Both the position numbers and the translations under genes were made by a program. From positions 47,489,494 to 47,552,801 of the forward strand of contig NC_068987.1 of assembly GCF_001194135.2 (NCBI RefSeq): DNA of 63,308 nucleotides. The letters run 5' to 3'. The DNA is from Octopus bimaculoides. Lineage: Eukaryota. A model generated the notes under the pieces. It worked only from the letters and a program-made list of their open reading frames with translations. It was not told the DNA's origin and made no database searches. Position 1 is the stretch's first letter; every line of letters begins with the position of its first letter. Of the stretch, positions 1-40,119 are shown in pieces.

Positions 1-1011
1 GAGAGAAATGAAGGTAATTAAGGTATACTGATATACAATATATGTGTATGAAGATTAGGCACTCTATGAAAATTTAGATTTAAATCTAGTAGAGGCTGGA
101 ATATTTAGAAAAATCAGTCTCAGTTAAGGGAATAAGTTTTAATATATATAGCAATTAAAAATGGAATGGGCTTTGAGCTTTATATTAGATACAATGGGTT
201 TACTAGTTTTAAAAAATCAACTAGTTTAATAAAAATGATAAATTAAAGAAATATATCAAGTGTGTTATAAACAATGCAAATGTTTTATTTGTAGGCAAGT
301 TTTATTTGTAGGCAATTTAGTGATATTACTATGGGGGTGTAATTATAGTCCTCTTTTAGCTGACTATACTTGGCATCTTGTAAGTTTAGCTTTTTTAATG
401 ATTTATAGAAAAAGAAGTTAGGTTTAGTTATGCAGTTAAGTGGCTATTATAGAAAAAAATATGGATGGTATTTTCATTCCAAATTATAGTTTATTTTAGT
501 GATTATTATACAAAATTCATCATAGGCATTAGATAGCTAGCAGAAATGATGAGGATGTTAAGCTTTATTCTCTAGTTGTTTCAGTTGATATTTGTAATAA
601 ATCTTTTGTTACTAATAAGACTTAAGAATTTAATTTTAAAGTAACTACTATGCTGTACATGGACAGCTGTACATGCCTATTAGACTAGTATATTACATAT
701 TTACTGCATATGTTGAGGTCAATTTGTTCAAGGCTTGGCTGATATACCCATAAGTTGTTTCTCTTCCTCCTGCTCATTGGTTTGTGATGATCATTTCTAA
801 TTTGGTGTCCAATGACTGAAACAAGTAATACAAGTAATAATTTTATAATATGTATGATTAGTTAAGTTTGTATTGCAAAAAGATTACATTCATTGAAATC
901 TAAATTTACTTAGTAATACTTTTAGTGAGTCTGTAGTTATTTCATGTTTACAAACAAAGTAGAAAATTTGAAATTTAAGATTGATAATAAATTATTGCTA
1001 ATTTTTAGAGC

Positions 1012-1866
1012 ACAAGAAAAGCTGAACATAAGAAGCATCAGTTGTGGTGTGCAAGAGAGGCGATTGCGCTGGTATGGACATGTGGTGAGAATGGACAAGG
1101 ATAGCTGCGTGAAAAAGTGCCACACCCTAACAATTGAGGGAACCCGTGGAAGAGGTAGGCCCAGGAAGACTTGGGCTGAGGTGGTGAGGCAAGACCTTTG
1201 AACATTGGGCTTCACCGAGGCAATGACTACTGACCGAGACCTTTGGAAATGTGCTGTGCATGAGAGGACCCGGCAAGCCAAGTGAGACCTAAATCCAAGG
1301 CCTCTGCCCTCTGCCAGGGGTGTAGCCAGCCCACTTATGCGTACCTTTCCTACATTGGACACTAAACTCCGCTTGCAAAGACTTGTTGAGGCAAGTGAAA
1401 TGGAACTAAATTCGACGACTGGCACCCGTGCCAACGTCGTCTCCTTCATTGGACATGAAACTCAGCTTGCGAAGACTTATTGGGGCAAGCGAAAGTGAAA
1501 TTGGGATAGCACCTGTGCCCAGCGTTGCCTTTCTAGCACTTGTGCCCGTGACATGTGTAAGGATTTTCGAGCGAGATCGTTGCCAATGCTCCTGGACTGG
1601 CTCTTGTGCGGGTGGCACACAAAATACACCATTTTGAGCGTGGCCGTTGCCAGTACCGCCTGACTGGCCTTCGTGCGGGTGACACGTAAAAGCACCCACT
1701 ACACTCTCTGAGTGGTTGGCATTAGGAAGGGCATCAAGCTATAGAAACTCTGCCAAATCAGATTGGAGCCTGGTGTTGCCATCCGGTTTCACCAGTCCTC
1801 AGTCAAATCGTCCAACCCATGCTAGCATGGAAAGCGGACGTTAAACGATGATGATGATGATGATGA
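1012..1866 (+). mobile_element. 5'-truncated RTE-clade LINE: RT C-terminus, long 3' UTR and (GAT)n tail
   Basis: Translation RLRWYGHVVRMD..SCVKKC..IEG.RGRGRPRKTWAEVVRQDL is typical of the RTE ORF C-terminus. The UTR ends in ccaacccatgctagcatggaaagcggacgttaaac(gat)n, a terminus repeated many times in this window. Confidence 0.9.
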
Positions 1867-2080
1867 TTGTATTTAATGAAGCTAATTAAAGAATGTATGC
1901 TTGGGTTGTATGAAACATTACTCATGAGTTGTTTATCTCACTCTTCCTCTTATTGGTTAGTAATGATCAATTCTACTTGAGTGCCATATTTTTCTTCTGT
2001 TGTCTTTTACATGTGAGAGCTTGAAAAGGCCAGACGGTTGGAAATTAACTCTGGTGATCATTTAACCCAGTTGTTTTCAT

Positions 2081-2233
2081 TTATTTTATTTTATTTCATA
2101 TAAATGTTGTGTTCAAGATTTATAATGTTGTTGATTTGTAATCTGAGTACTTGATGAAGATTGTCCTGGATCGACTTGCCTGGGATGGCACATGTCTGCA
2201 CCTTCCCTACAAGTTTCGCCATGACACACGTCA
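2081..2233. repeat. Diverged direct duplicate of ~2951-3100 (AT-rich flank plus truncated end of the Tx1-like LINE)
   Basis: Both copies read atttcatataaatg..gttcaagatttataatgttgttgatttgtaatctgagtact..tgaagattgtcctggatcgac.tgcctgggatggcacatgtctgcaccttccctacaa. Confidence 0.85.
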
Positions 2234-2245
2234 AAATTTAGCAAC

Positions 2246-2455
2246 AAATTTTGTTGCTAAAATTTATTGGCAATAAATTGGTTATACTTCTACAATGCAC
2301 AAAATATTTTAAGAATATTTTAAATACAATTCCTAATAATTTTTAATTATAAAAACATTATGGGATTTTTTGAACATCAAATGGCTAGTAGGGTCTATCT
2401 GAGTAAAATAGGAATCAAAGGGGTCTATTGATAAAAATTGGTTGAGAAACACTGA
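2246..2455. mobile_element. Partial hAT-type MITE (right half of the family at 50499-50751)
   Basis: Colinear with 50550-50751. Ends in ggttgagaaacactg, a CAGTG..TCTCAACC-type TIR. Confidence 0.7.
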
Positions 2456-3018
2456 TCTAACCTGTTCTTTTAGTTTAAGACTGGATCTTCCTTTTATGTT
2501 TATACTGTTTTATTTATGAGTAACAAAGTTATTTATATTATTTAAATAAGTTAATATAAAGTTAATTTATTAATAAGTAATTATTTGTAGGCTTTAGTTG
2601 TCATCTTAAAAATAGCATTTATGATTTATGAGTTTGTCATACTATGTTTCTTATGTTTTATTTATTGGTGTCTACTTTATATAAGTTGATTTACTGGTAA
2701 TTGTTATATATATGCTTTAAACCAGCAAGCAATCAGAATTGTTAACATACTGTACACAATTCTCAGCAACATTTCTTCTGGTTCTTTACATTCTAAGTTT
2801 AAATTCCACAAAGTTTGACTTTGCCTTTCATCCTTTTGGTTTTGATAAAATAAATATCATTTCATGTAATTAACTGGTCCCCTTCCCACAAAATTTCAGG
2901 CCTTGTGCTAATAGTAGAAAGAATTATTTATATGCTCTATATATTTTATATTTATTTATTTTATTTCATATAAATGTGTTCAAGATTTATAATGTTGTTG
3001 ATTTGTAATCTGAGTACT

Positions 3019-6015
3019 AGGTGAAGATTGTCCTGGATCGACCTGCCTGGGATGGCACATGTCTGCACCTTCCCTACAAATTTCTCCACAACACACGTCA
3101 ACCTTTTGGCTAACATCTTGGCCAAAATCTTTAACTCTACAATAAGTAGAGTTATGGGCCTATAATTACTAATGTTATCCCCCTTGGTTGGATCCTTGTG
3201 GATCAGCGTTACCACTCCCCAACTCACAGAACTGGGAATCCTCCCATTCTATTGCCAGTTTATGTAGACGCTGGCCAACAGGTCCTCGAACAAGTCCGGC
3301 ATACTACAATAAAACTCATGGAGTAGACCATCCAACCCCGGCAACTTATCCCTGGCACACTTGGCCAACACCTCCTTTACCTCCATTGGAGTAATCAGTC
3401 CTTTACAGCATTCTACCTCCATGCTGAGAGTCGCAGCCCACCAGCTAGAAAGTCCTTTAAGGGCTACCTATGCTCAAGCACTCCGCTCTTCCCGAACAAC
3501 TGGGCGAAATGCTGGTGAAAGGCCTTTTGCATCATTTCCTGTCCATAGATCTTGAGCCCCTGTTTGTCAGTTAAAGACTTTATAGAGGCTTTTTTGCCCT
3601 TCTGACTCTTCACACGACATGCCCATCCAGCAATGTTAACACCTTTTCGACCCACTGCATGTAACTTAGCTCTAACTCTGCTGCCTTTGTGTTTGGCTTT
3701 GAGGTGATGGTACAAGGCCGTTCTCACTGCCTGCACTCTAGAAGCAGAGCCAGAGTTCGTAGCCTTGTCTAAATTCTTAACTAGTTCCTTTTCTATTCTA
3801 GATTTATATAAACTTAGCTGATTGCTAAACTCTAAACCAATGACTCTCTTGAGGGTGTGGCACCATCCATTATTAATGATGGCACCACATAGTACCCTCT
3901 GTACTAACTCCTTAATCCAGGCACGGTAGGCTTTACAAGTCAAAATAGACTTGTTCATCTTCCAGTACATGGGTCTCTGTCTATGACATTTATCTATGTG
4001 TACCTCACATGTCACAAATTTGTGGTCTGTGTAAGGTACAATAAAAAATCGTGGACAGCTAAAAGTATTCTTATCTCTATCTCTAATGAATACCCTATCT
4101 ATGTAAGATCTGTGTGAGCCGTCATTATTACTCCACGTCCACTGTGGAACGCTCGGTTCATCCAGTCTGTAATGGTCTACTAGATTATAGCTCTCTAGTA
4201 GACACTTGAGGTCAGGATTTCCTTTCCTATCAGTTGAGCCAACACCATCCACCTGTGCATCGAGGATAGTGTTAAAGTCTCCTGACAGAACTACCGTTTT
4301 TGACATCACTAGAAAGTGCTCCAGGTCTTGAAAAAACCAGACTGCACATGCTCGTTAGGAGTGTAGACAACTACCAGCCTGAAGAACTGTTTACTCTTGT
4401 GGGTCACATCCAGGATGACCGCCCTACCTTCTGGGTCCAGAAAGACAGTACTTACCTGTACATCCAAATTCTTCCTGAATAAGACTACTATGGCCCTTCC
4501 TCCTTGTTGGCTAGGAGCTATAAATTTCTCGTAGTCATTCAAAAGAGGTGAGAACACTTGTGGTCCGCTCATCTTGGACTCAGTTACAATGCACACATCT
4601 ATATCATGTGACCTGAGGTCGTCCAGGAAACAAGTTCATTTCCAGTTCGACCCCAGACCATGCACATTCATGCACCCTAACTTAATTGACATGGTATAAA
4701 AATGTTAAAGGAGTACTTACAGTTTAAGTTCGCCTACCTCCCTATTTTTCTCTTTACTTGGTGTAGCTGCTGGGCTTTTTCCAGGTGTGGCAGCCAGATT
4801 ACAATAAGCCTCCCCTCCACCACATCAGAGCTGACATCTCTTATATACCAACAAATAAAGATTTCATCTCTTATATCCTCAGGATAGTGAGATTTCAGCT
4901 CTGTAAAAAGGGTACCATCCATTTTAGCAAATCTTACATCTTTTGCTGTGTCTTTAGTTTGTTTATAAGTTATCGCCTTGTGATGGTGTTTGATCATTCT
5001 TGCTAACAGTTTGTTATTTTCCTTGAACATCACAATTTTTTTCTTGTATTTTTGGGAGGGGTTTGGTAAATGGTTTTATTATGAGGTTGGACTAGAGAGT
5101 TTCATTTTATGTGTTTGCTGTTGTTGCTTTTGTTGATTTTTTTGTTTGGGGAGGGGAGTCGGGAATGTGAATCTTTTGTGAGTGATTGTGGTGAAGTTCA
5201 TTTCTTCGTTATCTTTACTCGTGTCTGCTTTAGTTTCTATATCGTCTTTTTTGTGTTTCCCTCTTTGCTGTTTGCTTCCTTTGTCATGTTCTTCTTGCTT
5301 GTAGCTTTTGGGGAGGGGCCTCGCCATCTTTTTGGGGGGGGAGATTTGGAACGGACATAGCCTTCTCTCCACATTTGAAGCACCTGGGCCTACGTCCTTC
5401 CACAGTTACCCGCATGGATAGCCCCTTCCCTACAAACACCCTATCGGGAAAATTTTCGAGGGTTGCATTGGCCACTTGAATGACCATTTCTAAGGATTGT
5501 CCTCACCAGTTTACCGCTTCTTTTTTCGTCATTTGTAGGATTGAAATTTCTTCTTCCACATTGTACACTACTGCAGCTGCTACCCACATTACTTCATACC
5601 CTACTGGAATCTTGTCCACTGTCACTTTTGCGGTCCTGCAACCCAAGTAAGTGGGCAGCAGCATTATCTCTTCATTTTTCGACATTTGTGTAGACACCTC
5701 CTTGGCTATGCTAGCTGACTCGAAATGTGCCTCAATTGGGGTGCTTCTTTCTCCTTGGCTAATGTAGTGTACTTTATTCCAGATAGGTGCCATACATTTT
5801 TCCACTGCTTCATTTTTGCATTCATTATACGCTTTTCTTTGATGTTGTAGACTTTGTACACAACTGTTTTCGCATTAATGGCTTGTACTGTCTCAGAGGA
5901 CGGCAACAATTTGGTATCCGCTCCACTATTTTTAATTAGATTTCTAAACTTGAAAAGCTGGTCTTTTGTTACTTCAAGTTCCGTAATGTTGCAGCCCACT
6001 GTGGCTGAAAAACGA
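3019..6015 (-). mobile_element. Tx1/L1-clade LINE copy 1, degraded: ORF1 with Zn-knuckle, ORF2 APE endonuclease and first half of RT; 3' end missing
   Basis: ORF2 starts MSIKLGCMNVHG at 4692. Motifs VVLSGDFNTILD, WTW..SYIDRVF and KDPTKGDNISNYRPITLL..ELKILAK are present. ORF1 fragments include RPRCFKCGEK. Many stops and frameshifts. Confidence 0.85.
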
Positions 6016-8975
6016 ATCAGGGCAAGGGACAACAGTCAGGCAGTAGGTGATGACAGATGCAATAAACACCTGTACCACCTCCTCCCTTCCTTTCAAGGAC
6101 AGAGACCTTCCGGACCAAGTCCGGACTAGTGCCTCCACCTTGTCTTCCACCTCATTCCAATTCTTCTCCGTCTGGAAGTCCGGTCCAAACCAAACTCCAA
6201 GCAACTTAACAGGACCATCTGTCCAGTGACCCATGATACTGGACGATATCGACTTGCTCCTCCAGGTGCTGAGGCACAAGCTGATGGACTTGTCTTTGTT
6301 AACTTTTGCCCCTGCCACTGCCTCATATCCTCTGATAGCATCTTCTACACAAGGTAGCTGTGCTTCATTGGACACGATGAAGGTAAAGTCACCCACATAA
6401 GCAGAAACAGACTTACCACATCCAATTTCATTAGGGTTGCCTCCCAACTTCTCCAACTTCTGCAGCAATGGCGCAAGAGCCAACACATACAGGAGCGGAG
6501 ACAAGGGACACCCTTTAAGAACTGAGTGCTTGATCGAAAACGGCTCCATCAGGTAACTGTTTATCTGGACTGTGGACTTGATGCCACCCACGCTTTACTT
6601 TGGTCTAAATGGACCATTGCCCTTCCTTTGCTGGATAATTTACCAACCCTGTCTAAGGTGTAGTGGATAAGGTGAAGATTGTCCTGGATCAACCAGCCTG
6701 GGATTGCACATGTCTGTGCCTTCCCTACAAGTTTCTCCATTACAGCCATCAACCTTCTTACTGACATCTTGGCCAAAATCTTTAACTCTACATTAAGTAG
6801 AGTTATGGTCCTGTAATTGCTAATACTATCCCACTTGCTTGGGTCTTTCTGGACCACTCCCTGGCTCACAGAACTGGAAATCCTCCCGTTCTGTTGCCAG
6901 TTTGTATAGACTCCTGCCAGTATATCCCTGAACAAGTCCGGCATACAACAATAAAACTCATAGGGCAGACCATTCAACCCCAGTAACTTTTCCCTGGTGC
7001 ACTCGGCCAACACCTCTTTTACCTCTGCGGAAGTGATCAGTCTTTCACAGCATTCTGCCTCATGTGCCGAGAGCCACCCGGCTAAGAAGTCCTTTAAGGC
7101 CTCCCCTTGCTCAAGTGAACTGCCCCCACCGAATAAGTGGGCGAAATGCTGGTGAAAGACTTTCTGCATCTCCTTCTGTCCATAGATCTTGCACCCCTGT
7201 TCATCAGTTAAAGACTTTATAGAGGCATTTTTACCTCTCTGACTCTCCACATGACATGCCCATCCGGCAACGTTAATACCTTCTCGCTTCCCTGCACATA
7301 GCTTAGCTCTAACTCTGCAACTTTCATGCTTGGAGTTGAGGTGACGGTACTAGATCGTTCGGATCTTTTTTAAAACGGGGGCCACATTTTTCATTAATGT
7401 TTTACGTAGTCTTTTTGGTACCGAAAGACTTTCAAACTTCGTATACTTATCTATTTTGTGTTATAGAACAAAAATATTTTTGTATTCGAATTTATTTCAT
7501 GTAAAAAATTGTCTTATTTCGATAATTTCAACCAATCACTGACAAGTATTCAGTTGTTTACATTTACTCCTTTGGCTGATTAAGCGGTGTAAAGCGTATT
7601 TAATTTCCATAGCTTCGTTTTGCTTTTTTTCTTTTTAAATTTGCTGTTTTACCCTAACCCTAACCCTATCACCGATAGAATTGTTTCAGAATCGTTTGTT
7701 TATGTAGTCGGCACTTAATGTATATCGGCTGAATGGACCTCAGTGATTGGTTGAAATTACAGAAATACGACAACTTTAACATGGAATAACTTTATGTGGA
7801 CACCTATGCTACATGGCAGTGAAACATGGACTGTAACTGCAGACGATATGCAAAGGCTCGAAAGAAATGAAGCCTGCTGGATGTGCAACTTCAGTGTGCA
7901 GGTATAGCAAAGATTAAAGAAGACTAAGAGAAAAAGATGTTTTATATGACACATTCTACCAGTGTTCCAAGTTTCAAAGTGTTTCGTTAATGAAAAATGT
8001 GGCCCCCGTTTAAAAAAGGATCCGATCGTTCTCACCACCAGCATTCTAGATGCAGAGCCAGATTCCACAGCCTCGTCTAGGTTCTTAACTAAATCGCCCT
8101 CTATTCTAATCCTATCTAAACTTAGCTGATTGCTAAATCAAATGGACTCTAAATGGATGGCTCTTTTGAGGGCGTGCCACCATCTATTATTAATGATAGC
8201 ACCACATAATGCCCTCTGTATGAAAGGCTTCGCAAGTCAAAATAGACTTGTTCATCTTCCAGTACCGGGGTCCCTGTCTATGACATTTATCTAAATGTAC
8301 CTCACACGTCACAAACTTGTGATCCGTGTAAGGCACAGTACAAAACCGTGGACAACTAAAAGTATTCTTATCTCTTTTCCTAATGAATACCCTATCTAAG
8401 TACGATCTGCATGAGCCATCGTTGTTACTCCACGTCCACTGTGGAACGCTCGGCTCATCCAGTCAGTAACGGTCTACTAGATTAAAGCTCTCTAGTAGAC
8501 CCTTGAGGTCAGAATTCCCCTTCCTATCAGTTGAGTCAACACTATCCCCCCGCGCATCAAGGATATTGTAAAAGTCACCTACTAGAACTACCGTTTTAGA
8601 CGTCACTAGAAAGTGCTCCAGGTCTCAAAAAGACCAGCCTGCCTACACTTTATTGGAGCATAGACAGCCACCAACCTGAAGGACTGCTTACTTATATGTG
8701 TCACATCTAGGTCAACCAGCCTACCTTCTGGGTCCAGAAAGACAGTACGTACCTGTAAGTCCAAGCTCTTCCTGAAAAAGACTGCCACACCCCCTCCACT
8801 TCCTTGGCTAGGTGAAATAAATTTCTCGTAACCATTTAGAAGAGGTGAGAACGCTTGAGGTCTTCTCATCTTGGGCTCGGTTGCAATAGCCACATCTACT
8901 CCATGTGACCTGAAGTCATCCAGGAAACAAGCCTGTTTCCTTTTCGACCCCATTCCATGCACATTCACACAACCC
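6016..8975 (-). mobile_element. Tx1/L1-clade LINE copy 2, degraded: ORF2 endonuclease and RT only, interrupted by a TIR element
   Basis: LGCVNVHG..FLDDFRSHGVDVAIATE; NYRTITLLNVELKILAK; KGCPLSPLLYVLAL; SAYVGD (YADD position); GAKVNKDKS; VKLLGVWF; LSLKGR. Colinear with copy 1. Confidence 0.9.
7361..8023. mobile_element. Non-autonomous TIR DNA transposon (MULE/Merlin-like: GG termini, 8-bp TSD), 663 bp
   Basis: TIR ggatc(c)ttttttaaa(a)cgggggccacatttttcattaa at both ends. Perfect TSD GATCGTTC at 7353-7360 and 8024-8031. The paralogous LINE copy 1 (~3716-3723) shows the empty site. Superfamily assignment is inference. Confidence 0.9.
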
Positions 8976-9192
8976 AACGAAAATAACAACAAACAGTTCT
9001 CGTCAAAAACAGTTGTAAATTACAATAACACAAGCAAAACACGAACTCACTCCGGCAGCAACAAAAAACGTCGAAACAAAAATCAAAGAGGGTATCCACA
9101 AGAGGCAAAAACAAGTGACTTGGTAGCTGTCGATGTCTCTCCGCCTTTGAAAACATATATATTTCAACTGAAATACATTCACTGATTTTTTA

Positions 9193-9423
9193 AAATAGAA
9201 ATAATACATTTCTAAATCTCTCAAAGAGATTTATGCAATAGCAGCATGATAAAGTGATAGTATGTTGTCAACTTAATGTGACAGTCCCATGAAAGGGAAG
9301 AATGCTACTGTTATTTAGCCCTAGGAAGCACCGTTTCCTGTTGGACTTGACACATTTCCTGTGTCCTTATGCTGCTACTGCATAAATCTCTTTGAGAGAT
9401 TTAGAAACGTATTATTTCTATTT
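9193..9423. repeat. 55-bp inverted repeat pair with a ~120-bp spacer
   Basis: 9193-9247 versus the reverse complement of 9369-9423, 2 mismatches. Confidence 0.85.
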
Positions 9424-9454
9424 CCCCAATTGTGTTAAATATGTTTTCATCATC

Positions 9455-9670
9455 ATCATCATCATCCTCATCATCATCATCGTCATCATCATCTAATGTC
9501 TATTTTTCTTGTTGGCATGGGTTGGACGGTTCTACAGCAATTTGGAAGTTAGACTGCAACAAACTCTGCTGTTTGTTTTGGCATGGTTTCTTTGGCTGGA
9601 TACCCTTACCAGCACCAACCACTTTACAAAATGTACCGGGTGCTTTTTATGTGGATCCAGCAACAGTGAG
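9455..9670 (-). mobile_element. Old RTE 3' tail with (TCA)n
   Basis: Reverse complement of the shared RTE terminus, next to a (TCA)n run. Confidence 0.7.
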
Positions 9671-10519
9671 GTTACCAAGTAACTTGCAGAACAAGACGCC
9701 TCAAATGAGGTTTGGGGGGAGTAGTATTGAGGGACAAAAAGGGAGACATGCATTAGAGAGGAAACATGATTGCTTCAAGTGAGGTGAGAGTGGAGGAGAG
9801 TGAGAAAAGGAAGAGAGAGGGAGAAGATGGTCAAGATGTGAGAGTGAGTGGACCTGAGATCGGAGAAGGTGAGTGGGTAGGTTCCTGAGACTGCAAAAGG
9901 ACAGAGGTTGATGGAGGGGGATGTAGTGAGAAGACACAAGTAGAGAGAAAAGGTATTAGGAGGATATGCTCTGGGGAAGAAATTCAGTGGGGACATATAG
10001 TGTGTAGGTAGGTACATGTGGTAGAGTGGGGGGAAATGCAGTGAGTGGTGAGCATGAAAGGTGGAAGGGGTATAGGGAAGATGGGCTGTGGAGGAGGTGG
10101 GGACCGATTGTGTGGGGAGGGGAGGCATGGACACGAAGGACATGTCTTTATGGCCTCACTTTTACTTAGCTGGCAAGTCTGAAGCATAGTAAATTGCCAA
10201 ATGTCTTAATCATTTCGTCTGTGAAGCTTAATATTTGAAGATCTGTGGTTTAAAGGTACAAAATAAAGTTGCTTGTACCTCAAGTTGTAATCGGGGACAA
10301 CAGCTAAATCATTCAGTTGTAATCATATGTTGACTCTACCGATCTCTTGCCAGCTAGGACCACTATGCATGGCTGCTATTAGAACACGACTTGCCTTGCC
10401 CGCAGACATTGTAAGAAAGAGGCCAACTTTACCTGTTGCTCACTGACATGACGTCATCTCCTCCCCTTTCAATCTACCCGCAACATCTCTCTTCCTCCCT
10501 GCCAGTCAATTAGCCTTCC

Positions 10520-10940
10520 ACCACAAGATCATTTGTTCCACATCTTGAGTCTTCTTCTTTCAAAGGTTCCCTCCATATTTATTGACTGGCACCTCTATAT
10601 GGAGCTGTCCTCCTCCTCCATGCCAACACAGTCTCCTCTCTTGCACACTACAAATGATGTCTTTTACATCCAATTTTATCCTTAGTACATTTTAATCTTT
10701 GCTATACCTGCACACTGAAGTTGCACATCCAGCAGGCTTCATTTCTTTCGAGCCTTTGCATATCGTCTGCAGTTACAGTCCATGTTTCACTGCCATGTAG
10801 CATAGGTGTCCACATAAAGCTTCATACAATCTGCCTTTCACTCTGAAAGAGAGGCTTTTGTTATCAACAAAGGTAATAACTCTCTGAACTTTGTCCAACT
10901 GGTTCTTATTCTAACTATTACACTTTCAGAGCAACTGCTT
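10520..10940 (-). mobile_element. Old RTE RT C-terminal fragment
   Basis: Homologous to 26170-26560 and 49290-49730 (MLHGSETWTVT..L.RNEA..VQERRL.W). Confidence 0.8.
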
Positions 10941-11055
10941 CCATTGCTAATATGAAGGGCTAAAGGTAATTTTTTTTTATAGGAATATACTGCTTTGTAA
11001 GAAGTTATAGCTTAATGAGTTTGGAAAGCTACCATATGGCAGATATGAAGTATAA

Positions 11056-11140
11056 ACCACCACCACCACCACCACCATTGCCACCGCTGCTGCTGCCGCC
11101 ACTGCCGCCACTGCCACCACCACCACCACCACCACCACCT
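11056..11140. repeat. (CCA/CCG)n trinucleotide tract
   Basis: Direct reading; explains the poly-Pro and poly-Trp ORF calls. Confidence 0.9.
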
Positions 11141-11392
11141 GCATGTGAACTTAACGTGCAAGTGGCTGAGCAATCTACAAACATGCCTGCTCTTAATATA
11201 GATCTCAGGGAGATTTAGCATGGCAGAATGTGACGAAGTTGGATCTTTGAAATACAGGTACTACTCACATTTGCCAGCTGAGTGGACTGGAGCAATGTGA
11301 AATAAAGTGTTTTACTCAAGGACATAATGCACTGCTAGGTATTGAACTCACAACCTTATGATCTTGAGCTGAATACCCTAACTACTTAGCCA
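11141..11392 (-). mobile_element. tRNA-derived SINE, family C (second copy ~34490-34650)
   Basis: Minus strand reads gtggctaagtagttagggtattc..gtgagttcaatacc..gtccttgagtaaaacactttatttcac: A/B-box head plus conserved body. Confidence 0.7.
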
Positions 11393-11949
11393 CTTGCTTT
11401 CACTTCACACATACATGCACATGCAGTCATGTGGCTTTTCTCAGCAAGAAACCTGTTCTGCTCTGGTCCTATTCTCACATACTTTACTTTTTTCTACTCG
11501 TTCTCTGAGCATAAAGTTGCCCCAACCCTTTGAGGTTCATAGTTTTGCAGACAGCACAGCAATCTCATTAGTACTGGTGGCATGTAAAAAGCACTCAGTA
11601 CATGCTGTAAAGTGACGTTAGGAAGAGTATCCAGCTATAAAAAAACAATGCTAAGTCTTTGGGTCCATCAGATTATGTCAAACCGTCCAACCCATGCCAG
11701 CATGAAACATGGACGTTAAATGAAAATGACTACGAAGATGATATATGTCCTGCTACTTTTCAGTTTCCATCAACCAAATGCAATCGCAAACTTTGGTCAG
11801 CCTAGGGTTAAAGTAGACGATACTAGCCCGAGGTGCAACGCAGTGGGTCTGAACCTGAAACAATGTGGTTGGGAAGTAAACTTCTTAGCGCCTACAGTAA
11901 TCGAACGCCTTGTCTTTCGTAAATGATATATTTGTGTGATTGAAAGTGA

Positions 11950-11960
11950 ATGTGTGTGTA

Positions 11961-12021
<61 letters not shown>
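11950..12021. repeat. (TG)n(AG)n compound microsatellite just upstream of the ZNF unit 1 promoter region
   Basis: Direct reading. Confidence 0.95.
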
Positions 12022-12022
<1 letters not shown>

Positions 12023-12089
12023 GTGTACACATACACATATCCATCCATAGAGAAGGTAGTTTCTCTGGTTAGCGATTACATCTCGTACC

Positions 12090-12225
12090 GCCATCCATAG
12101 TTTCAAGAAGTCCTAACACTCCCGTAATAATCCTTCACACCTCTTACTACTTCCTTTCGGTTTAACTTCCCTTGCTGACATCTCTGTCGGCAGGAAAGCG
12201 ATCGTTTCTCCCCAGGTAGGTATGC
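12090..12225 (+). promoter_or_regulatory. Predicted promoter and non-coding exon 1 of ZNF paralog 1 (donor CAG|GTAGGT)
   Basis: Homologous to 39165-39263 and 52279-52363, each upstream of a ZNF CDS and each ending at an aligned GT donor. TSS not determined. Confidence 0.65.
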
Positions 12226-13585
12226 TTCATTCTCTTATCTACCCTCATTTGTATATACAGTCCTGTTGCATACCAATTATACATTAGTTACTAGACATAT
12301 TAACTATAAAACATTTGCAACACATCCATCGCGTCTTCTCAGTCGGTGACGAAGTGTGTGGCTTTGTTTTTCGTCTTGAGATGTTGTGTTGATGGTGGAC
12401 AGAGAGAAAAGATTTGTTGCTGTGATGAGTGTTATCGGTAGGCAACAAGGTTTAATTACAGCAGACTATATAAATCAGACCACACAGTAAATGTGATGAT
12501 ATAAAATAAAGCTCTCCGCCATCAGACAGAGAGGAGAGGTGGTTTTCTTTTGCCACTCTGGCGACCAAGAATTTAACCGTAAGTTATTTATCTGGTCTAT
12601 GCAGGTTCGAATGGCGTTGAAGTCATTCATTTAAATTAGTGAAAGATTTCAATTAACCACCCTCACTATTCTCTTTTCTGATCCACTATGAAATTTTCCT
12701 AGAGCTTTTAATATAAATCTGTCTTGGATTACTGTAATCTTTTTACTAAAAAATTTAATCCCATTAATATTCTCACATTGTTTTAAAACTAACCTCTCCT
12801 ATACAATATACTCAACGACCTTCCCCCTTTTTAATATTGTTTCTCCTTTATTATTCTGTTTATTGGCCTCGTTATTATTGTTGTTTAACTATATGAGTAC
12901 ATTTGTTGTTGTCGATGATGATTGTATATATGTTTTTATTAGAGCAGAGTATTTTAACCTTCATCTTTGCTTTCCGTTAACAATCAAATGGTCATATTTT
13001 CTCCGCGTGTCCGTCTATGTATTTTTATTACTGTTCATTTTTGCAGTACTTTTGCCTGGAGGTTGCCCTAACCTCTCTCTCTCTCTCAGCAAATAGAATA
13101 ATTGCGGAAAGGCTGGCAACAACGATTGCTACTCCGTTGCATAGTCCACTCCCACCAATTCTCTGATCAAAGCAACTTCCATGTTCGATGTCTTCCAAGT
13201 TGGCCAGACGTGTTTATTTGATAATTCTCACCAATTTCTGTACATAATACTCAACACAAGGGGAGGTAGACTGGAGGTCATTTAGGCATTGTAACACCCA
13301 TTTTATATCACTGACCATACAAAGATATCTATGTCTCCCGCCCACCATTCTTCACATTCTCATGTTTTTTCTTTTTACCTAAGGTCGGTACCGTTGTATT
13401 TCATATGGATCCAACGAACGAAAATAACTGACCGGACATAGCAGAGGCATATGCATCTTTAATTAACCCTATAAAAAAATATAAAAACCACTTCACTTAT
13501 ATTGAAGTTAAATAAGCAAGTGTATTAGTGTGGTACACACATGACTCAGTGGTCCAGTATCTAGCTCCACCACCAGACCTCGTGG

Positions 13586-13619
<34 letters not shown>

Positions 13620-14099
13620 TACACACACATATATCTCCGTTTTTGTAAAGATTAGCTTTTATCCTTCACATTTTCTCAATATTTTGTCTGTGTGTACTAT
13701 CAGCTCTAGGATTCAGGAAATTTTCCTTCTCGGCCACCGGAATCCTGGTACTGTGTCTTACTATACACACACACACACACACACACACACTTTATTAACA
13801 ACGCATTTTTGCATTATTAATCATGAGTTTTAAGAATCTATCACGAATTTCTTTGTATTCGTTTGCTCACTACGAATTGAACACGTCGATCTCATCATCT
13901 GATGCCCTTGTGACAAATAATAGAAATCATTACGATAGTAGGATGGTGAGAAGAGATTCCCACTTTAGGATTGCGGCATCATGGACGGTCAGTTCCTCAA
14001 GTTCAAAGCCATTGAAAGTTGCTTTCCCTTTTCTCCATTAGTTAATAATAATGATTTTGTTTTGAAGTGATACCACTTCACATTTTTATAAAAGGCGGA

Positions 14100-14670
14100 T
14101 ATAGTTGATTGCACCGACTTCGTTACTTAACTGTTTTTATTTTATCAACTGTGGAAGGATTTGAACTCAAAATGTAGCGGAAGGAATCTAGGCGCTGTCA
14201 TTCTACTCACTAACCTTCGCAGAGTTATTAAAAACAATAATAATAGTTCTTTATTTGCAACAAGGGGGATATTAATGATTTCTAACTTTGGTACAAGACC
14301 CTCACATTTTGGAGGAAGAATACGGTCACTTAAATCGACCTGATTGGTATTTTATCTTTTGAAGGGTCGTTAAAGCGTCCGATAAAATGCGTTTCGGTAT
14401 TTCTATCCTGCTCTTTATGTTCTGGTTTCAAATCACGCTGAGCTCAACTTTGCCCTTCTTCCTTTCAGGATCGATAAAATGAGGCACCAGTCAGGTATTG
14501 GGCTCGATGCTTTCTGTTTATATGTAAAACAGTTATTTTATCAACGCGTGTTTGATGAAAGGTGATGTCGACCCCCAGCGAAATATGAACTTAGAATGTA
14601 AAGGGGCATAACTAAAATACTAGGTGACATCTAGTCTTGTACTCTATTTCTGCCAACTCACCACTCAATA
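14100..14670. mobile_element. Cluster of degraded tRNA-derived SINE family B fragments
   Basis: Repeated ttctg.gttcaaat..ctcaactttgcc.ttc.tcctttc.gg.tcgataaaat motifs in both orientations. Confidence 0.6.
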
Positions 14671-16409
14671 ATTGCAATGGACGGGGGCAGTCTATAAAGA
14701 TAGACAACTAACTGTATACACTGTTAGATTACGGCCTGTATTATTTACGTTTCAAATAATCTATAGAAACAATCCCTCCGAAAAGTAATTTGAACCTCTT
14801 AACCAACTTCGAACCTACGTAGAACAATTTTATGCGTAAAAATCTAACTGGGCTTTTAATGATTGGATTTAGTCGGTTATTTGTAGCAGATTACCGATGA
14901 TAGATGTTATTAATTAGACCGTTACTATATCTACTTTAAACAGCTGCCATACTCGATATTATAAATATACTGCAACCATTATTGGCTAAACGAAAATGGG
15001 AAGTATTGACTGGGCGGGGTGGGATGAAGGCTCCTTAATCCCAGCATTTCCACCTAGTTGGTTGGTCCCATCTGTTAATGGACTCAGGTAAAGCCAGGTT
15101 TTTAACTGGTATTTTGTCGGTTTATTTAATGGCTATAACTGCATTAAAAGCTGAATATTCAAAGCTGCTTCGGGGCAAAATACTTTTCTACTTTAACATT
15201 ACCCCTCCCGTCCCCTTTTCACCCACTTATCTGCCCACTACTTTTTGTTCTTTCTCTCTCTCTCCACCTGACCTGCCTAAATTCTTTTCTCCCTTTTCGT
15301 TTCTCCCTTTCTCACTCTCACCACTCTCCTTTTCTTTCTCCATCATCTCACATATCTCATAATCTCCCTCTTACTTCCACCGTATCGCTTCATAACTTTC
15401 TTTCCTCATCTCCTCTTTTAGCCCTTCACGTCTCCTCCTCTCTCTTTTACCTCACCCTTTTTTATCGCTCTCTCTCTCTCTCTCATCAAGTCACATCTCT
15501 TTTACCTCACCCTCCATCTTACCCCTTCTGTCTTATTAACTCTCCCTTTTTCCTTATCACTTTTTCCTTATCACCCCTTCTGTCGTACCTCACCCTCTAT
15601 ATTACAAGTTAATTACTATCTGAAACTGATTTCCGGCAATGTGTGCGTGCGTGCGTGTTTTCTTCCCTCATTCCACAAGTATGTAGGTTGGTAGGGACAA
15701 CATTGTGCTTCTGGGAAGGAAATACAACCTTGAAACATCAGCTTGCATTTGAAACACCCAACTGTAGCTTTTCCCTCGTAACGTTGCTCAGCTCCTTGGC
15801 CGTAATTAAACAATATCAGCTATGTTGTTGTCAGCTGTTATTTAGCATGGTTTGGAGAATATAAATCCAGCTATGATCCAGTTGCTTATAGATAAGGTAC
15901 CGTAACTTTATTAAGTAAACCACATCGATTACTCCCTCTCTCGCAACATATTTGATACTTCTTTCTCTGAAGCCAAACTCTCTTGATTAGAGATTAATTC
16001 TATCTGTTGAGTAACTGAACCGTGTATTCCTTTCTTACCAGGGATATATTCTCCCTCCACATTGTTATAAGAAGTTGATTCGTTGGTTCCTCCACCTTCA
16101 AATTTACTGCCTACAAGTAATGTGGACTGAGATTGTTTCTTTAAAAAAAAAAACGAGAAACAATCTAGTTGTCAACGTACGAAAGAAAACTCATTACCTA
16201 ATGAACGCGGACATAGACGTACAGTTAAGAAATTCGTTTCGCACCTTTGTGCTTCCGAGTTCGATTCTAGTGCGCTACATCTTGAGCAGATATCTTTTAC
16301 AGTACGCTTACGTTGAAAAATGTTTTGTGGGTGGAATTTAATCGACCGAAACTGGGGGAAATAATCGTGTGTATGTGTTTATGTATTGTTTGTAGTGTAA
16401 AGCACCGTT

Positions 16410-16745
16410 TAATGTCTTTTCCATGCATGCATAGGTGAAACGGATTTTGTTGAAGCAGATTTTCTACGGCTGGGTGTTCTTCTTGTCACCAACCCTCGAC
16501 CTGGAAACCAGCATCGCTTGTATGATGGTGATGCTCGTTTACAACAAACCGTGACGCTAAGTCACAATGCACACATTCATCATCATCATTTAACGCCCGT
16601 TTCAGTTTCTCTCTACGAAACCCACTCATAAGGCTTTGATTGGTCTAGCCCTTCAGTAGAAGACACCCTTGGTGTCATACAGTGGGACTGAACCCAAGAC
16701 CACATGGTTGGGAAGCAAGATTACTTCTCAACCACACAGTCACAT
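16410..16745 (-). mobile_element. SINE family A head with RTE-type tail (A2 form)
   Basis: Head gtggttgagaagtaatcttgcttcccaaccatgtggtcttgggttcagtcccac. Similar copies at 23905-24345 (-) and 47590-47870 (+). Confidence 0.65.
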
Positions 16746-18107
16746 CAGTATCTATGCGGAGCTATAAACAAAGTAGTGGAGATGTATATGGATCTAACAG
16801 TGTTGTATACAGCCAGGCCTGTCTAGTATCATATGTTCCATCTGTGACCATATTGTTTTTCCTTTTTTTTTGTTTGATTTTCAGTCATAGAATATCAAGG
16901 ATTTGGACTACATCATCTAATGTGTCCTTCCTTGTTTATGACATTAGAATGAGATTTGGTTTATATTTTTAGCAGCTTGAGAAACTTAGGTAAAGCTCCC
17001 TCATTGCTACTGTTATTGTTTAACCTGTGCTGTGATGCATAAAAGGCACATATGCTGGTGACAGGTAAAGGACACCCAGTATACTCTGTGGAGTGGTTGG
17101 CATTAGGAAAGGCATCCAGCTGTAGAAACTAAACCAAAACCGACTGGAGCCTGATGCAGCACTCCGGCTTTCCAGTTCTGGTCAAACTCTAGCCCATGCC
17201 AGCATGGAAAATGGATACTGAATGATGATGATGATGACAGGTCAGCCCTGATGCAGCAGATCTCAGTGTTGATCAATAATGTATCTAGCACTGTGTTATC
17301 TAATGTGTCCTTTCATGATTAAGAGACTAGAGGAGGTTTGACCACTACTACTTATAGGTGGAATGAACAATAAGAGACATCCTCATTGGATTGATTGTCA
17401 GCATGTGTTTTAAGGACATGAAAAGAAAGTGTTAATTAGGAACTGTACTTAAATGATGGAGGGAATGGAATTGTGAGCTATAGTTTACCTGACCAAAATG
17501 TACACTGAGAGGATGGTATTTGTTTGCATTTTGTGTGGCATAGATGATTCCTGTTACATGGTACAGTACAGTGTTTCTCATGGGAAAAGGCCTGTGATAA
17601 TTGAAAAGAGGAGCAGACTGCATCATCATCATTGTTGACTAATGTCCACTTTTCCATTGTTGCATGAATCAACAGAATCCATTGAAACAGATTTTCTTCA
17701 GCTGAATGCCCTTCCTGTTACCAACCAAGCAAAGTAGTATATTTCCCTCATGCCCAGACATGATTTTCACAGAATACTGAAAATAAACAACATTGCTTAT
17801 ATGACAGTAATGCTCATTTACAACTGTTACATGAGCTACAGACAAGGGTGCACGCATGTGCAAGAGTGCATTTTGCACCAAAAGCCAATATGAGAGTTTC
17901 TCTCTTGGTATCTTTTGCAGTATAGTTTGTTCTAACAGAACATTCATGTTTAAGTGGGAATAAATATTACATCTCAGTATTAATACTGCCTCTGTTGCTA
18001 ATATATATTTTTATACACTTAAAGTCCCAGCTGACCAAAGCCTTGTCATGGATTTGGAAAAAAAAAAAAAANNNNNNNNNNNNNNNNNNNNNNNNNNNNN
18101 NNNNNNN

Positions 18108-21512: not shown

Positions 21513-22232
21513 ATGGAATTGTTGCCAGATTCTGAAGCTGAGCCATACTACTGTGGAGTATGTGGCAAAGAATTTCTTGTTCATGCATTATTGGAGAAAC
21601 ACTTGAAAACCCATACAGTAGAGAGACGTTTCTCTTGTGACATCTGCGGGAAAGACTTCTTGAAAAACTCTCACCTGACAAGACACATAAGAACACACAC
21701 GGGAGAGAAGCCTTTCCACTGTGACATCTGCGGCAAGGATTTCTCCGAGAATTACACCTTAAAAAACCACATAAAAACGCATACTGGAGAGAAACCTTTT
21801 CATTGTGATATATGTGATAAGGATTTTACTGAAAGATCCACATTGAAAAAACACCTGAGGATCCACACCGGAGAAAAGCCTTACCATTGCACGTTGTGTG
21901 GGGATAGCTTTACAGACCATTCTACTTTAAGATGTCACTTGAAGAAACACACAAGAGAAGAAAAATCATTCCAGTGCGAGACCTGTAGCAAGAATTTCAC
22001 TACTAAAGCCGCTTTGAAAGGCCACATTCGAATACATAAGAAGGAGAAAACGTTTCCTTGCAAGGAATGTGGGAAAGAATTCTCACTTAGCCTCCAATTA
22101 AAGGCACACATGAAAACACACGCCAAACCTGAGCCACAGTTGAAATCGAATATTTTACGCTGTAAGATATGCGGGGACAACTTTCTGGACAATGTTGCTT
22201 TAACAAGTCATCTAAGAATACATAGAGACTAA
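21513..22232 (+). CDS. C2H2 zinc-finger protein, 8 fingers, 239 aa, no KRAB/SCAN/BTB/ZAD domain (paralog 1)
   Basis: 8 x CxxC-x12-HxxxH with TGEKP-type linkers. Strong start context aaaATGG with an in-frame TGA two codons upstream. Acceptor tttcag| at 21440. Confidence 0.95.
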   Translation: MELLPDSEAEPYYCGVCGKEFLVHALLEKHLKTHTVERRFSCDICGKDFLKNSHLTRHIRTHTGEKPFHCDICGKDFSENYTLKNHIKTHTGEKPFHCDICDKDFTERSTLKKHLRIHTGEKPYHCTLCGDSFTDHSTLRCHLKKHTREEKSFQCETCSKNFTTKAALKGHIRIHKKEKTFPCKECGKEFSLSLQLKAHMKTHAKPEPQLKSNILRCKICGDNFLDNVALTSHLRIHRD

Positions 22233-25084: not shown

Positions 25085-27121
25085 CCTGATAGATAAAGCA
25101 GTTAAGGGTATGAAGCCAGGAAAAACCTCCGGCCCTACAGGAATCACTGAGATGCTTAAAACATCTGGTGGCGTAGGCTATGGCCTAGTCACCTGTATTG
25201 TAAACCAGGTGGTTCATGATGAAGTCGTACCCAATGACTGGTGTAGCAGCACCATAGTCAACTGCTCCAAAGGTAAAGGTGATGCTTTAGATAGAAATAA
25301 CTACAGGGGTATCAAACTGCTGGATCAGGTGATGAGGGTCACAGAGAGGGAGAGAGTTTGCTTAGATGAGATGCAGTTTGTTTTTGTATCAGGTAGAAGC
25401 ACCACTGATGCTATATTCCTGGTATGGCAACTGTAGGAGAGATACCTAGCCAAAGATAAGCCCCTATATTTGGCTTTTGTAGACTTGGAGAAGCCTTTGA
25501 CAGGGTCCCCTGATCCCTTATCTAGTGGGTGATGCGGAAACTGAGAATTGATGAATGGTTAATTAGGGCTGTACAGGCCCAATACAGAGATGCCGTTAGT
25601 AAGATTAGGATTGGCAATAAGTATAGTGAAGAATTCTGGGTAGAAGTAGGGGTCCACCAAGGATCAGCCCCGTCTTATTCATCATGGTTCTCCAGGCAAT
25701 AACAGAGGAGTTCAAGACAGGTTTTCCCTGGGAGCTCCTCTATGCTGATGACCTGGCCTTCATAGCAGAATCACTACCAGAACTAGACAAATTTCAAGTG
25801 TGGAAGCACGGTTTAGAATCAAAAGGCCTTAGAGTCAATGTTGTAAAGACCAAAGTTCTAGTAAGTAGGAAGGTGAACACATCACACACCCCTTCAGGTA
25901 GGTGGCACTGCTCGATCTGTAGAAAAGGTGTAGGTAGAAACTCCATAAAATGTATCCAGTGTTAGCTATGGACACATGAGAGGTGCAGCAACATCAAAGG
26001 AAGATTAACTGGGAAGATAGCTTTGTGCAGCAGATGCACGGGGGCAATAAATGCCAGATGCTCAGAAAGCAGATTCCATCATATGCCAGGGGAAGAAACT
26101 AGAAGTAGTTGATAGCTTCCACTACTTAGGTGGCCAAGTCTGTAGTTGGCGTGATGCTCAGAAAGTATTACCACCAGAATAAGAATAGCCTGGGCAAAGT
26201 TCAGAAAGCTTCTACCCCTACTGGTGACAAAGGGCCTCTCTCTCAGTGAAAGATATGTTGTATGATGCATGTGTGTGAACTGCTATGCTTCACAGCAGTG
26301 AAACAAGGGCTGTGACTGCTGAAGACATGTGTAAGCTCAAAAGAAATGAAGCTAGCATGATCTGCTGGATGTGTAATGTCAGTGTGCACACACAACAGTG
26401 TAAGCACCCTGAGAGAAATGTTAGACATAAGAAGCATTGGATGTGGCGTGCAAAAGAGACGTTTGCATTGGTATGGTCATGTACTGTGGATGGATGAGGA
26501 GAGCTGTGTGAAGAAGTACCACTCCCAGTCAGTGGAAGGAAGACATGAGATGAGGTAGTGAAGCATGACCTTCGAATGTTGGGCTTCACAGAGGCAATGA
26601 CAAAAGACCCGAGACCTCTGGAAGTATGCTGTAACTGAGAAGATCTGGCAAATAAAGTGAGTTCACAGCTGTAACCTACACCAGCATCACATAACCAGCC
26701 CACTCAAAAGTACCTTGGATCATAGGGTGACATGCTGTGCTTGAGGAGACCTATTGAGTCAAGTACATCCACATCAAAATCAAATCAAATCAAATGGAAA
26801 TTGTAGTTCTGACCCTCGTGTCGGTGGCACGTAAAAAGCAAAATCTGAACGTGGCCGATGCCAGTGCCGCCTTGACTGGCTTCCATGCCAGCGGCATGTA
26901 AAAAGCAGCATCTGATTGTGGTCAATGCCAGCTCCTCTGGTGGCACATAAAAAGCACCTACTACGCTCTCAGACTGATTGGCGTTAGGAAGGGAATCCAG
27001 CTGTAGAAACACTGCCAGATCAGATTGGGGCCTGGTGCAGCCTCCTGGTTTCCCAGACCCCAGTTGAACCATCCAACCCATACCAGCATGGAAAACGGAC
27101 ATTAAATGATGATGATAATGA
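25085..27121 (+). mobile_element. 5'-truncated RTE LINE: RT domain, 3' UTR and (GAT)n tail
   Basis: GKGDALDRNNYRGIKLLD, WELLYADDL, KGLRVNVVKTKVL, DSFHYLG, RRLHWYGHV. Frameshifted. Confidence 0.92.
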
Positions 27122-37879: not shown

Positions 37880-38178
37880 TAATGTTATGACTGATCCTTC
37901 TGGTGGTGTAAAACACTCGTGGTGGTGCTATGTGAAAGTGCCTGTGTGGTGCCACATAAAAGTGCCCGTGCAGCAACACATAAAACCGCCCATGTGGCTT
38001 CATGTAAAAGTACATAGAACATTCTGTAAAGTGGTTGGCATTAGGAAGGGCATCCAGCTGTAGAAACCATGCCAAATCAGACTGGATCTGATGCAGCCCC
38101 CCCCCCAGCTTACCAGCTCTGGTTATACCATCCAACCCATGCCAGCATGGACAATGGATGTTAAATAATGATGATGAT
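37880..38178 (+). mobile_element. RTE 3' UTR/tail fragment
   Basis: gtggttggcattaggaagggcatccagctgtagaaacc..ccaacccatgccagcatgg..(gat)n. Similar tails at 17060-17240, 18990-19230, 43740-43910 and 48380-48660 (-). Confidence 0.8.
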
Positions 38179-39164: not shown

Positions 39165-39263
39165 GTCATCCATAGCTATGGTTGCTATCCAATTGCCGGT
39201 TCTCTTTTTTAAACTTCCCATGCTGACATCTCTGTCGGCAGGAAAGCGATCGTTGCTCTCCAG
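39165..39263 (+). promoter_or_regulatory. Predicted promoter and exon 1 of ZNF paralog 2 (donor CAG|GTATGT)
   Basis: 34 nt identical to unit 1 (39221-39254 = 12173-12206); aligned donor. Confidence 0.65.
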
Positions 39264-40119
39264 GTATGTACGGTACACTTCATTCGCGTATCTATCCTCA
39301 TTCGTATTAATAGTCCTGTGCATACTAATCATACACCAGTTACTCGACGTATTAATTGTAAAACATTTGTAACACTTCATCACGTCTTCTCAATCGATGA
39401 CAAAGTGTGTAGGTTTTTTTTTAATTTTTCCTTTTTTTTTTTTTTGTCTTGAGATGTGTTGACGGACAGAGAAATGTTGTTGGTGTGTTGGTGTCGGTAG
39501 ACAGACAGGGCGACCTCATAGTAAAACTACAAGACATCAAGATCGACAGAGAGAAATGGTGTGACATGGTCTGGGATTTGGACAAGAGCTATTTGTCTGG
39601 TCAATGTGGGTTCGAATTGTGTTGAAGTCAGTCATTTAGATACCTTGTAGGTTTTAATTAATCACCCACCCTCTTTTCTCACCGATTACGAGTTTATCGC
39701 AGAGCCTTTAACGTAAATATGTGTTGGATTACTCTAATCCTCACATAGAAACCTCAGTTAATCCCCTAATGTTTATGTTTTGGCATATGGTCACCTCCCG
39801 CTATAGATTATATTATCAACGACCTTTCCCCATTTTCATATTGTTACCCTGTCTGCCATCTGTTTCTCTGATCTGGGCGGTGTCATTAAACATTGCTTAT
39901 GTTGTTGTTGGTGCTGTAGGTGGTCTGATCGTTGTTGGTGTTTCAAGCCCCAAGCCAGTCTTGAACAATGGTCATCTTGTCTTATTTTCGGACAGTGCAT
40001 GTAGATTGCTAACGCTGTTATTGTTGTTGTTGGTGATAATAATGATGATGGTGGTGGTGAGGATTAAATATTGGGCGTTCCTCTTACAAGCATCAATGTT
40101 ACTATGTTACTGATACGTT

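Follow-up and report, generated by a model that had tools for sequence, protein, structure and literature searches.

How does a short piece of one transposable element come to lie, base for base and in inverted orientation, inside another element a few kilobases away? The question is raised by a 63-kb window of Octopus bimaculoides (assembly GCA_001194135.2, chromosome CM046607.1), the window being the whole stretch of DNA that was analysed. In it, one short segment is the reverse complement of another at every one of its 129 bases, as seen in a pairwise comparison and again in a repeat search that reports the same pair, so that the perfect inverted copy described in the first-pass annotation is confirmed. 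The two copies are separated by 2.8 kb and bracket 2.7 kb of sequence:

7790..7918, plus strand: captured segment, 129 bp, the sense strand of the C-terminal region of a retrotransposon reverse transcriptase (…MLHGSETWTVTADDMQRLERNEA…)
10691..10819, minus strand: donor tract, inside a decayed retrotransposon fragment, identical to the captured segment at 129/129 positions

A self-comparison of the whole window by megablast at an identity of at least 95% returned nothing beyond this pair and, unrelated to it, a small palindrome at 9193-9423. As there is no comparable pair in the window, such repeats are not typical of the assembly in general, and a chance origin of the 129/129 identity is excluded. 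The two copies also have a 9-bp deletion in common. In an alignment with two other retrotransposon copies, both the insert in the TIR element and the fragment at 10.7 kb read GAAGC/CTGCTGG (the slash marks the deletion), whereas the copies at 49295-49690 and 26150-26400 read GAAGCTAGCATG(C/A)TCTGCTGG, with TAGCATG(C/A)T present at the deletion site. The alignment thereby bears out the earlier statement that the insert carries the donor's deletion of about 9 bp, which is absent from the other two copies in the window; it is 'private' in the sense of these three copies visible in the window only.

Whether one of the two copies was inserted into pre-existing DNA depends on what surrounds them. 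The captured segment lies within a small element that itself interrupts a larger one, and the features that define this arrangement are as follows:

7361..8023, no strand: TIR element, MITE-like and non-autonomous, 663 bp or 534 bp without the insert, nearly all of it one imperfect hairpin, identified from inverted repeats and arm alignment
7361..7397, plus strand: left TIR GGATCTTTTTTAAAACGGGGGCCACATTTTTCATTAA, 37 nt, matching the reverse complement of 7987-8023 at 35/37 positions
7987..8023, minus strand: right TIR, 37 nt, from the inverted-repeat search and arm alignment
7353..7360, no strand: left target-site duplication (TSD) GATCGTTC, identical to 8024-8031
8024..8031, no strand: right TSD GATCGTTC, a perfect 8-bp direct repeat of 7353-7360
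5974..8992, minus strand: non-LTR retrotransposon copy hosting the TIR element, endonuclease followed by reverse transcriptase, from ORFs and Pfam
3716..3723, no strand: empty site GGCCGTTC, present as a single copy in the paralogous retrotransposon at 3019-4681, with no element there, from junction alignment

The host retrotransposon was recognised by Pfam matches to Exo_endo_phos on 8609-8992 and to RVT_1 on 5977-7250; these matches are weak, and the majority do not reach the gathering score. On either side of the TIR element it aligns to its paralogue at 80% identity (6670-7350 to 3019-3713 and 8038-8978 to 3730-4681). Taken together, the TIRs, the 8-bp TSD and the empty-site paralogue indicate that the TIR element truly inserted here, and did so before the capture. 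Donor, recipient, TSD and empty-site paralogue had been said to be visible in one window, and all four are located there.

The element has several of the properties by which MITEs are defined, being small and devoid of transposase coding capacity (534 bp without its cargo) and having TIRs, a TSD and a known empty site. It contains no native ORF of more than 37 aa, one read-through ORF excepted, and a 103-aa ORF that covers both the right TIR and the insert brought up no candidate family member in the protein collection. Its termini are GGATC, and a 24-nt core of the TIR occurs within the window only at the two element termini, with 0 occurrences expected by chance. No second copy of the element and no autonomous partner were found in the window, and a 25-nt TIR core gave 0 matches in metagenome contigs. 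An 8-bp TSD fits several superfamilies, namely hAT, P, Merlin and some Mutator elements. Folded as single-stranded DNA, the element with its insert has a predicted dG of -107.6 kcal/mol (z -9.9), and the loop of the hairpin contains (CCCTAA)2. With 0 Rfam families returned for the whole window, the hairpin belongs to no RNA family described there.

The direction of copying can be read from the other end of the pair:

10569..10933, minus strand: decayed, truncated fragment of a reverse transcriptase-bearing non-LTR retrotransposon (called 'RTE' in the first-pass annotation), with stop codons in every frame

This fragment aligns with 49303-49680 and 26155-26388 at an identity of 72-74%, over stretches reaching beyond the tract on either side, and an RVT_1 match was found on a copy related to it. 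The retrotransposon homology at 10.7 kb extends more than 100 bp beyond each tract end, whereas in the TIR element it is confined to the tract. Because the homology continues past both ends at 10.7 kb and stops at them in the element, the copy was made from the 10.7-kb fragment and placed in the element. The donor tract is 76-78% identical to the other copies and its flanks 68-82%; with a divergence like that of its flanks, the tract is native at 10.7 kb, where it has been retained. The decayed fragment is thus probably the source and the TIR element the recipient, the alternative being that the template was a third, identical copy at some other place in the genome.

We considered the opposite course of events, in which the segment belongs to the consensus of the TIR family and the fragment was converted from the element, or in which an older capture was later homogenised with the fragment. 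The first-pass annotation had itself named such an element-to-fragment conversion of 10691-10819 as a finding that would overturn its reading, and it is contradicted by the continuous and evenly diverged homology through and beyond the tract. The flanks of the insert bear on the same point. To the left of the tract the identity between element and fragment ends sharply (8/33 matches), leaving no residual homology at that junction. To the right there is a weak similarity, with 19/33 matches in register (ACTAAG, AAAA, GACA), which speaks for an older or ancestral cargo and has a p of about 5e-4 with all 33-mers of the window as the null, or of 0.02-0.03 when a gapped local score is set against a composition-matched null. 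The sequence in question is, however, homologous to the element's own left arm, in which the insert has no counterpart:

7919..7951, plus strand: element-native right-arm sequence, 24/29 aligned positions matching the left arm, which also resembles the continuation of the donor

This match to the left arm shows that 7919-7951 is native to the element. The left arm without the segment, together with the nearness of the donor, would also suggest an insert-less family consensus. We therefore regard ancestral cargo or reversed copying as extremely improbable, and gene conversion of an older capture was rejected on the same two observations, the lack of residual homology on the left and the native right flank.

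The junctions lie in the right arm of the element. When the 129 bp are removed, the right arm realigns with the left arm across the breakpoint with a gap of only 4 nt, confirming that the insert interrupts the right arm of a long imperfect inverted repeat whose collinearity is restored by its removal. At most about 10 bp of 534 were lost from the target (0-2% of the element), and the breakpoint lies 105 bp from the element end. There is no microhomology (0 nt) at the left junction and 2 nt at the right one, where the insert ends in AA and the same two bases stand just before the insertion site. The microhomologies that had been proposed earlier do not hold: CTTT sits at 7774-7777, off the left junction, and ACTAAG begins beyond 4 mismatched nt on the right. 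As a simple primer ACTAAG is ruled out by these four mismatched bases, which are kept in the product. A circular permutation, suggested by GAAG standing before the tract in the donor and after it in the element, was also set aside, 4 nt being too weak a basis; the GAAGAC of the right arm is matched by GAATAC in the left arm.

The position of the breakpoint is of interest in relation to the predicted fold of the reconstructed, insert-less element (-92.3 kcal/mol, z -11.2):

7492..7789, no strand: inner hairpin of 298 nt in the predicted fold of the insert-less 534-nt element, its 3' base being the insertion point

In this fold 7492-7502 would pair with 7779-7789, and the next base is 7919. An insertion at the base of the predicted hairpin would agree with a stall or break where the DNA is structured, without proving one.

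Fresh retrotransposition was considered as a source of the insert and rejected. Target-primed reverse transcription leaves a copy with its 3' end, commonly recognised together with 5'-truncation and a TSD of its own, whereas this insert is an internal piece of reverse transcriptase-coding sequence, cut at both ends, with neither a 3' end nor its own TSD, and it is a copy of the decayed neighbour down to the deletion.

Could the duplicate have been made by the assembly process instead? The 129-bp segment might have been misplaced, or homogenised with the copy at 10.7 kb, while repeats were being resolved or gaps closed. Seven N runs in the window point to scaffolds built from short reads, a kind of read that covers hairpin-forming DNA poorly, and an exact repeat of 129 bp is resolved at a late stage of assembly, so that the perfect identity may be overstated. 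Both copies nevertheless lie in one gap-free stretch (1-18071), the nearest N run starting at 18072, and no other near-identical short duplicate of this type occurs in the 63 kb. Element and fragment have no overlap of k-mer length at either junction, so a mis-join in the assembly graph is not expected, and, unlike a random misplacement, the insert sits precisely at the point from which the arms align again. On balance we think an artefact very unlikely. A homologue search of the Logan assemblies with the neighbouring retrotransposon ORFs returned nothing above 64% identity, and hence nothing from this locus.

The explanation that we favour, with moderate confidence, is that a gap was filled from a template by template switching, without transposition, inside an element that had already been inserted. 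According to this scenario the retrotransposon copy would first have received the TIR element. Long afterwards, the base of the element's inner stem-loop may have suffered a break or a stalled replication fork, and the repair strand would have switched to the opposite strand 2.8 kb downstream, where 129 nt of the decayed retrotransposon fragment were copied, before synthesis returned to the element at almost the same position. The product would be a single-copy, Pack-TIR-like chimeric element that is still where it was made. The copying itself, its direction and the inverted orientation are plain from the alignments; the break or stall, the part played by the hairpin and the polymerase pathway would be the events behind them.

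A free fragment could in principle have produced a similar outcome. In that case a 129-nt piece from the 10.7-kb region (a by-product of repair, a cDNA or a small extrachromosomal DNA) would have been ligated into a double-strand break by end joining, in keeping with the essentially blunt junctions (0 and 2 nt) and with the retention of the donor. Minimal junction microhomology does not separate a template switch from the ligation of a free fragment. The strong proximity in cis and the inverted orientation, in contrast, are predictions of template switching, and donor and target may have paired, as the weak similarity beyond the right junction hints; neither splice-site nor polyadenylation features mark the ends of the tract, and the free fragment itself is hypothetical. 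We consider end joining of this kind distinctly unlikely.

The first-pass annotation had likened the insert to the acquisition of neighbouring DNA by TIR transposons. In a transposition-dependent version, the element was excised or an excision was attempted, and gap repair from the sister or homologous copy aborted at the hairpin, with a brief switch to the decayed fragment. Such abortive gap repair is classical, as described for P elements and Ac/Ds. The 37-nt TIRs look intact (35/37), the 8-bp TSD is perfect, TIR families including MITEs are reported to have been active recently in a related octopus (PMC13282606), and the product would look the same as under transposition-independent gap filling. 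Abortive gap repair is, however, expected to leave larger internal deletions and breakpoints biased towards the termini (PMC8277862), while here about 10 of 534 bp at most were lost at a point 105 bp from the end, and the window contains no autonomous partner or second copy. We judge this version unlikely. Nothing at the locus shows a transposase at work and the published profile of such cases favours transposition-independent repair; on an involvement of the transposon the annotation goes too far.

The perfect identity also sets a rough time frame. With 0 differences at 129 sites, the pairwise divergence is below about 2.3% at the 95% level. If the time scale for transposable elements in Octopus vulgaris is applied, on which a Jukes-Cantor distance of 0.09 corresponds to approximately 25 My (PMC13282606), the capture would roughly be less than 3 My old, provided that the identity is neither inflated by assembly nor held by gene conversion. 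By an equally rough estimate, a divergence of 22-28% from its relatives would make the decayed fragment tens of millions of years old. The in-cis part of the 'recent in-cis capture' proposed earlier, from donor to recipient with its 8-bp TSD and the empty-site paralogue close by, is seen directly in the window, and its recency is probable on this reckoning.

The insert had further been placed 4 kb from a zinc-finger (ZNF) promoter. At 12163-12371 there is a block with 83% identity to 39209-39422, which lies upstream of the second ZNF gene. The block hardly varies over its first ~50 nt, which finish with CAG/GTA:

12163-12222: putative exon-like block with a GT splice donor, conserved between both ZNF loci

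A ZNF ORF lies at 21513-22232, with a tttcag acceptor before it; the 6.7 kb around this ORF on chromosome CM046607.1 agree with the window at every base. These similarities make it plausible that a ZNF gene has a non-coding, conserved first exon about 4.3 kb from the insert, with 12163-12217 as the candidate, and the promoter itself is likewise plausible.

It had also been suggested that the locus, which lies in a zinc-finger gene cluster, shows how cluster DNA could be mobilised. We regard this as speculation, since single-copy cases with a nearby parent are the class that has not moved. Should the chimeric element still be mobile, and be the founder of a multicopy Pack-TIR family that is forming in cephalopod zinc-finger clusters, one could watch cluster DNA being taken up and spread by TIR elements in a live system. 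This idea is highly improbable, as is, taken jointly with it, the variant in which the 129-bp inverted pair, bracketing 2.7 kb beside the putative first ZNF exon, drives an inversion polymorphism. What the element has taken up is non-coding transposon debris that shares about 75% identity with other copies; as nothing points to movement or expression, its functional consequence is probably nil.

The phenomenon is known and has already been described in animals, and the octopus locus is a new example of it. It is an unusually legible one, with donor, recipient, TSD, empty site and both junctions within 8 kb, and it comes from a cephalopod, a lineage unmentioned in the main text of the survey of animal Pack-TIRs (PMC8277862). 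The insertion at the base of a predicted inner hairpin would in addition fit the idea of a 'fragile site inside the TE'. Its use lies in being a worked example and a starting point for counting such captures across the octopus genome; it opens no new question.

How closely the locus resembles known systems is best judged against the animal Pack-TIRs. For single-copy animal Pack-TIRs, gap filling independent of transposition was inferred by Tan et al. (2021, Nat Commun 12:4280; PMC8277862). Of all Pack-TIRs, 57% lie within 15 kb of the parent and most of those within 5 kb; the single-copy ones in animals have a median gap of 4.6% of the TE length, internal breakpoints and a median microhomology of 2 bp, and in primates the element usually predates the capture (PMC8277862). 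The octopus element matches each of these points. Like the animal single-copy Pack-TIRs, it has foreign DNA inside one TIR element and a near-identical parent on the same chromosome less than 5 kb away, and the same likeness extends to the tiny loss from the element, the internal breakpoint and the microhomology of 0-2 bp.

By the operational definition of Tan et al. (PMC8277862), the foreign sequence of a Pack-TIR is to be flanked by both termini (at least 10 bp each) of one TIR element, which is the case here when judged on the element's own ends, and to share 100-5000 bp with the parent at an identity of at least 90% and a length ratio of 80-120%, for which the octopus pair has 129 bp, 100% and 1.0. 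The parental copy is the unique best match within the 63-kb window, and there is no sequencing gap at the parent, the nearest N run being that at 18072. The difference lies in the cargo: unlike in the animal Pack-TIRs, it is a decayed retrotransposon fragment and not unique or genic DNA (PMC8277862). Parents are required to be free of TEs in their 100-bp flanks, whereas this one lies inside 10569-10933. The pipeline of Tan et al. discards parents with TEs in these flanks (PMC8277862), and with its parent inside a retrotransposon fragment the octopus case would have been excluded by it; octopus is absent from the main text of that survey (PMC8277862). The label 'Pack-TIR-like capture' given in the first-pass annotation accordingly stands as regards termini, size, identity and length ratio, and falls short as regards the TE debris that makes up the cargo and the TEs in the flanks of the parent.

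The plant Pack-MULEs and Pack-CACTA elements are similar in that a non-autonomous TIR element contains duplicated genomic DNA and the donor is retained. Those elements usually contain fragments of genes or exons, are often multicopy and interchromosomal, were mobilised after the capture and belong to defined superfamilies, whereas the octopus element has one known copy, non-genic cargo and no sign of movement. A third group for comparison is the filler DNA, or templated insertions, found at breaks, which is known from abortive gap repair at P and Ac/Ds elements, from FoSTeS/MMBIR and from polymerase-theta end joining. As in filler DNA, the template is short, nearby and, as is often the case there, inverted, with little or no microhomology and an untouched donor. 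At 129 nt the insert is longer than typical theta-mediated insertions, and the pathway is not readable from sequence alone. In view of these likenesses and differences, the octopus locus can, from its sequence features, be filed as 'Pack-TIR-like with TE-derived cargo' and not as a gene-capturing Pack element.

Directly past the right end of the 129-bp perfect tract captured in the TIR element, a non-autonomous, MITE-like element that forms a hairpin, the element's native arm at 7919-7951 still resembles the continuation of the donor at 10658-10690, with 19 of 33 positions matching in register and ACTAAG, AAAA and GACA as the matching blocks. The resemblance may be homeology that steered the switching strand, the repair strand that would have passed from element to donor and back, on its return. 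The match has a p value between 5e-4 and 0.03, varying with the null chosen, and it may instead reflect chance similarity in A-rich sequence. The hairpin of the TIR element carries a telomere-like (CCCTAA)2.5 run, at 7653-7669, in the region of its apical loop.

A second palindrome, possibly another MITE, is separate from the TIR element and unrelated to it:
9148-9449, palindromic element
9193-9247 and 9369-9423, its 55-nt arms, 96% complementary
9148-9170 and 9427-9449, its outer arms, abutting a (TCA)n run

The TIR element's host, an endonuclease-plus-RT retrotransposon copy (5974-8992), lies head to tail with the copy of the same retrotransposon that carries the empty site (3019-4681). Both are on the minus strand, about 2 kb apart and 80% identical, and could be separate insertions or the products of an old local duplication. 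An interspersed repeat family of about 180 bp, probably a SINE, often has its members beside the retrotransposon copies; its eight copies listed here, in both orientations, share 70-81% identity:
1674-1867, 9470-9662, 17052-17237 and 26937-27121, first four copies
38006-38178, 43786-43912, 48382-48561 and 49864-50078, other four copies

Upstream of two ZNF genes, a block is conserved at 83% between 12163-12371 and 39209-39422; about 50 nt of it are near-invariant and end in a splice-donor-like CAG|GTA. From its sequence, the block is a candidate for a non-coding first exon and promoter shared by tandem ZNF paralogues. Three single-exon C2H2 zinc-finger ORFs form a tandem array:
21513-22232, + strand, 239 aa
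46163-46867, + strand, 234 aa
55428-56096, + strand, 222 aa

The first two share 73% DNA identity over 950 bp, and the tandem arrangement of these ORFs is a pattern typical of octopus ZNF expansions.
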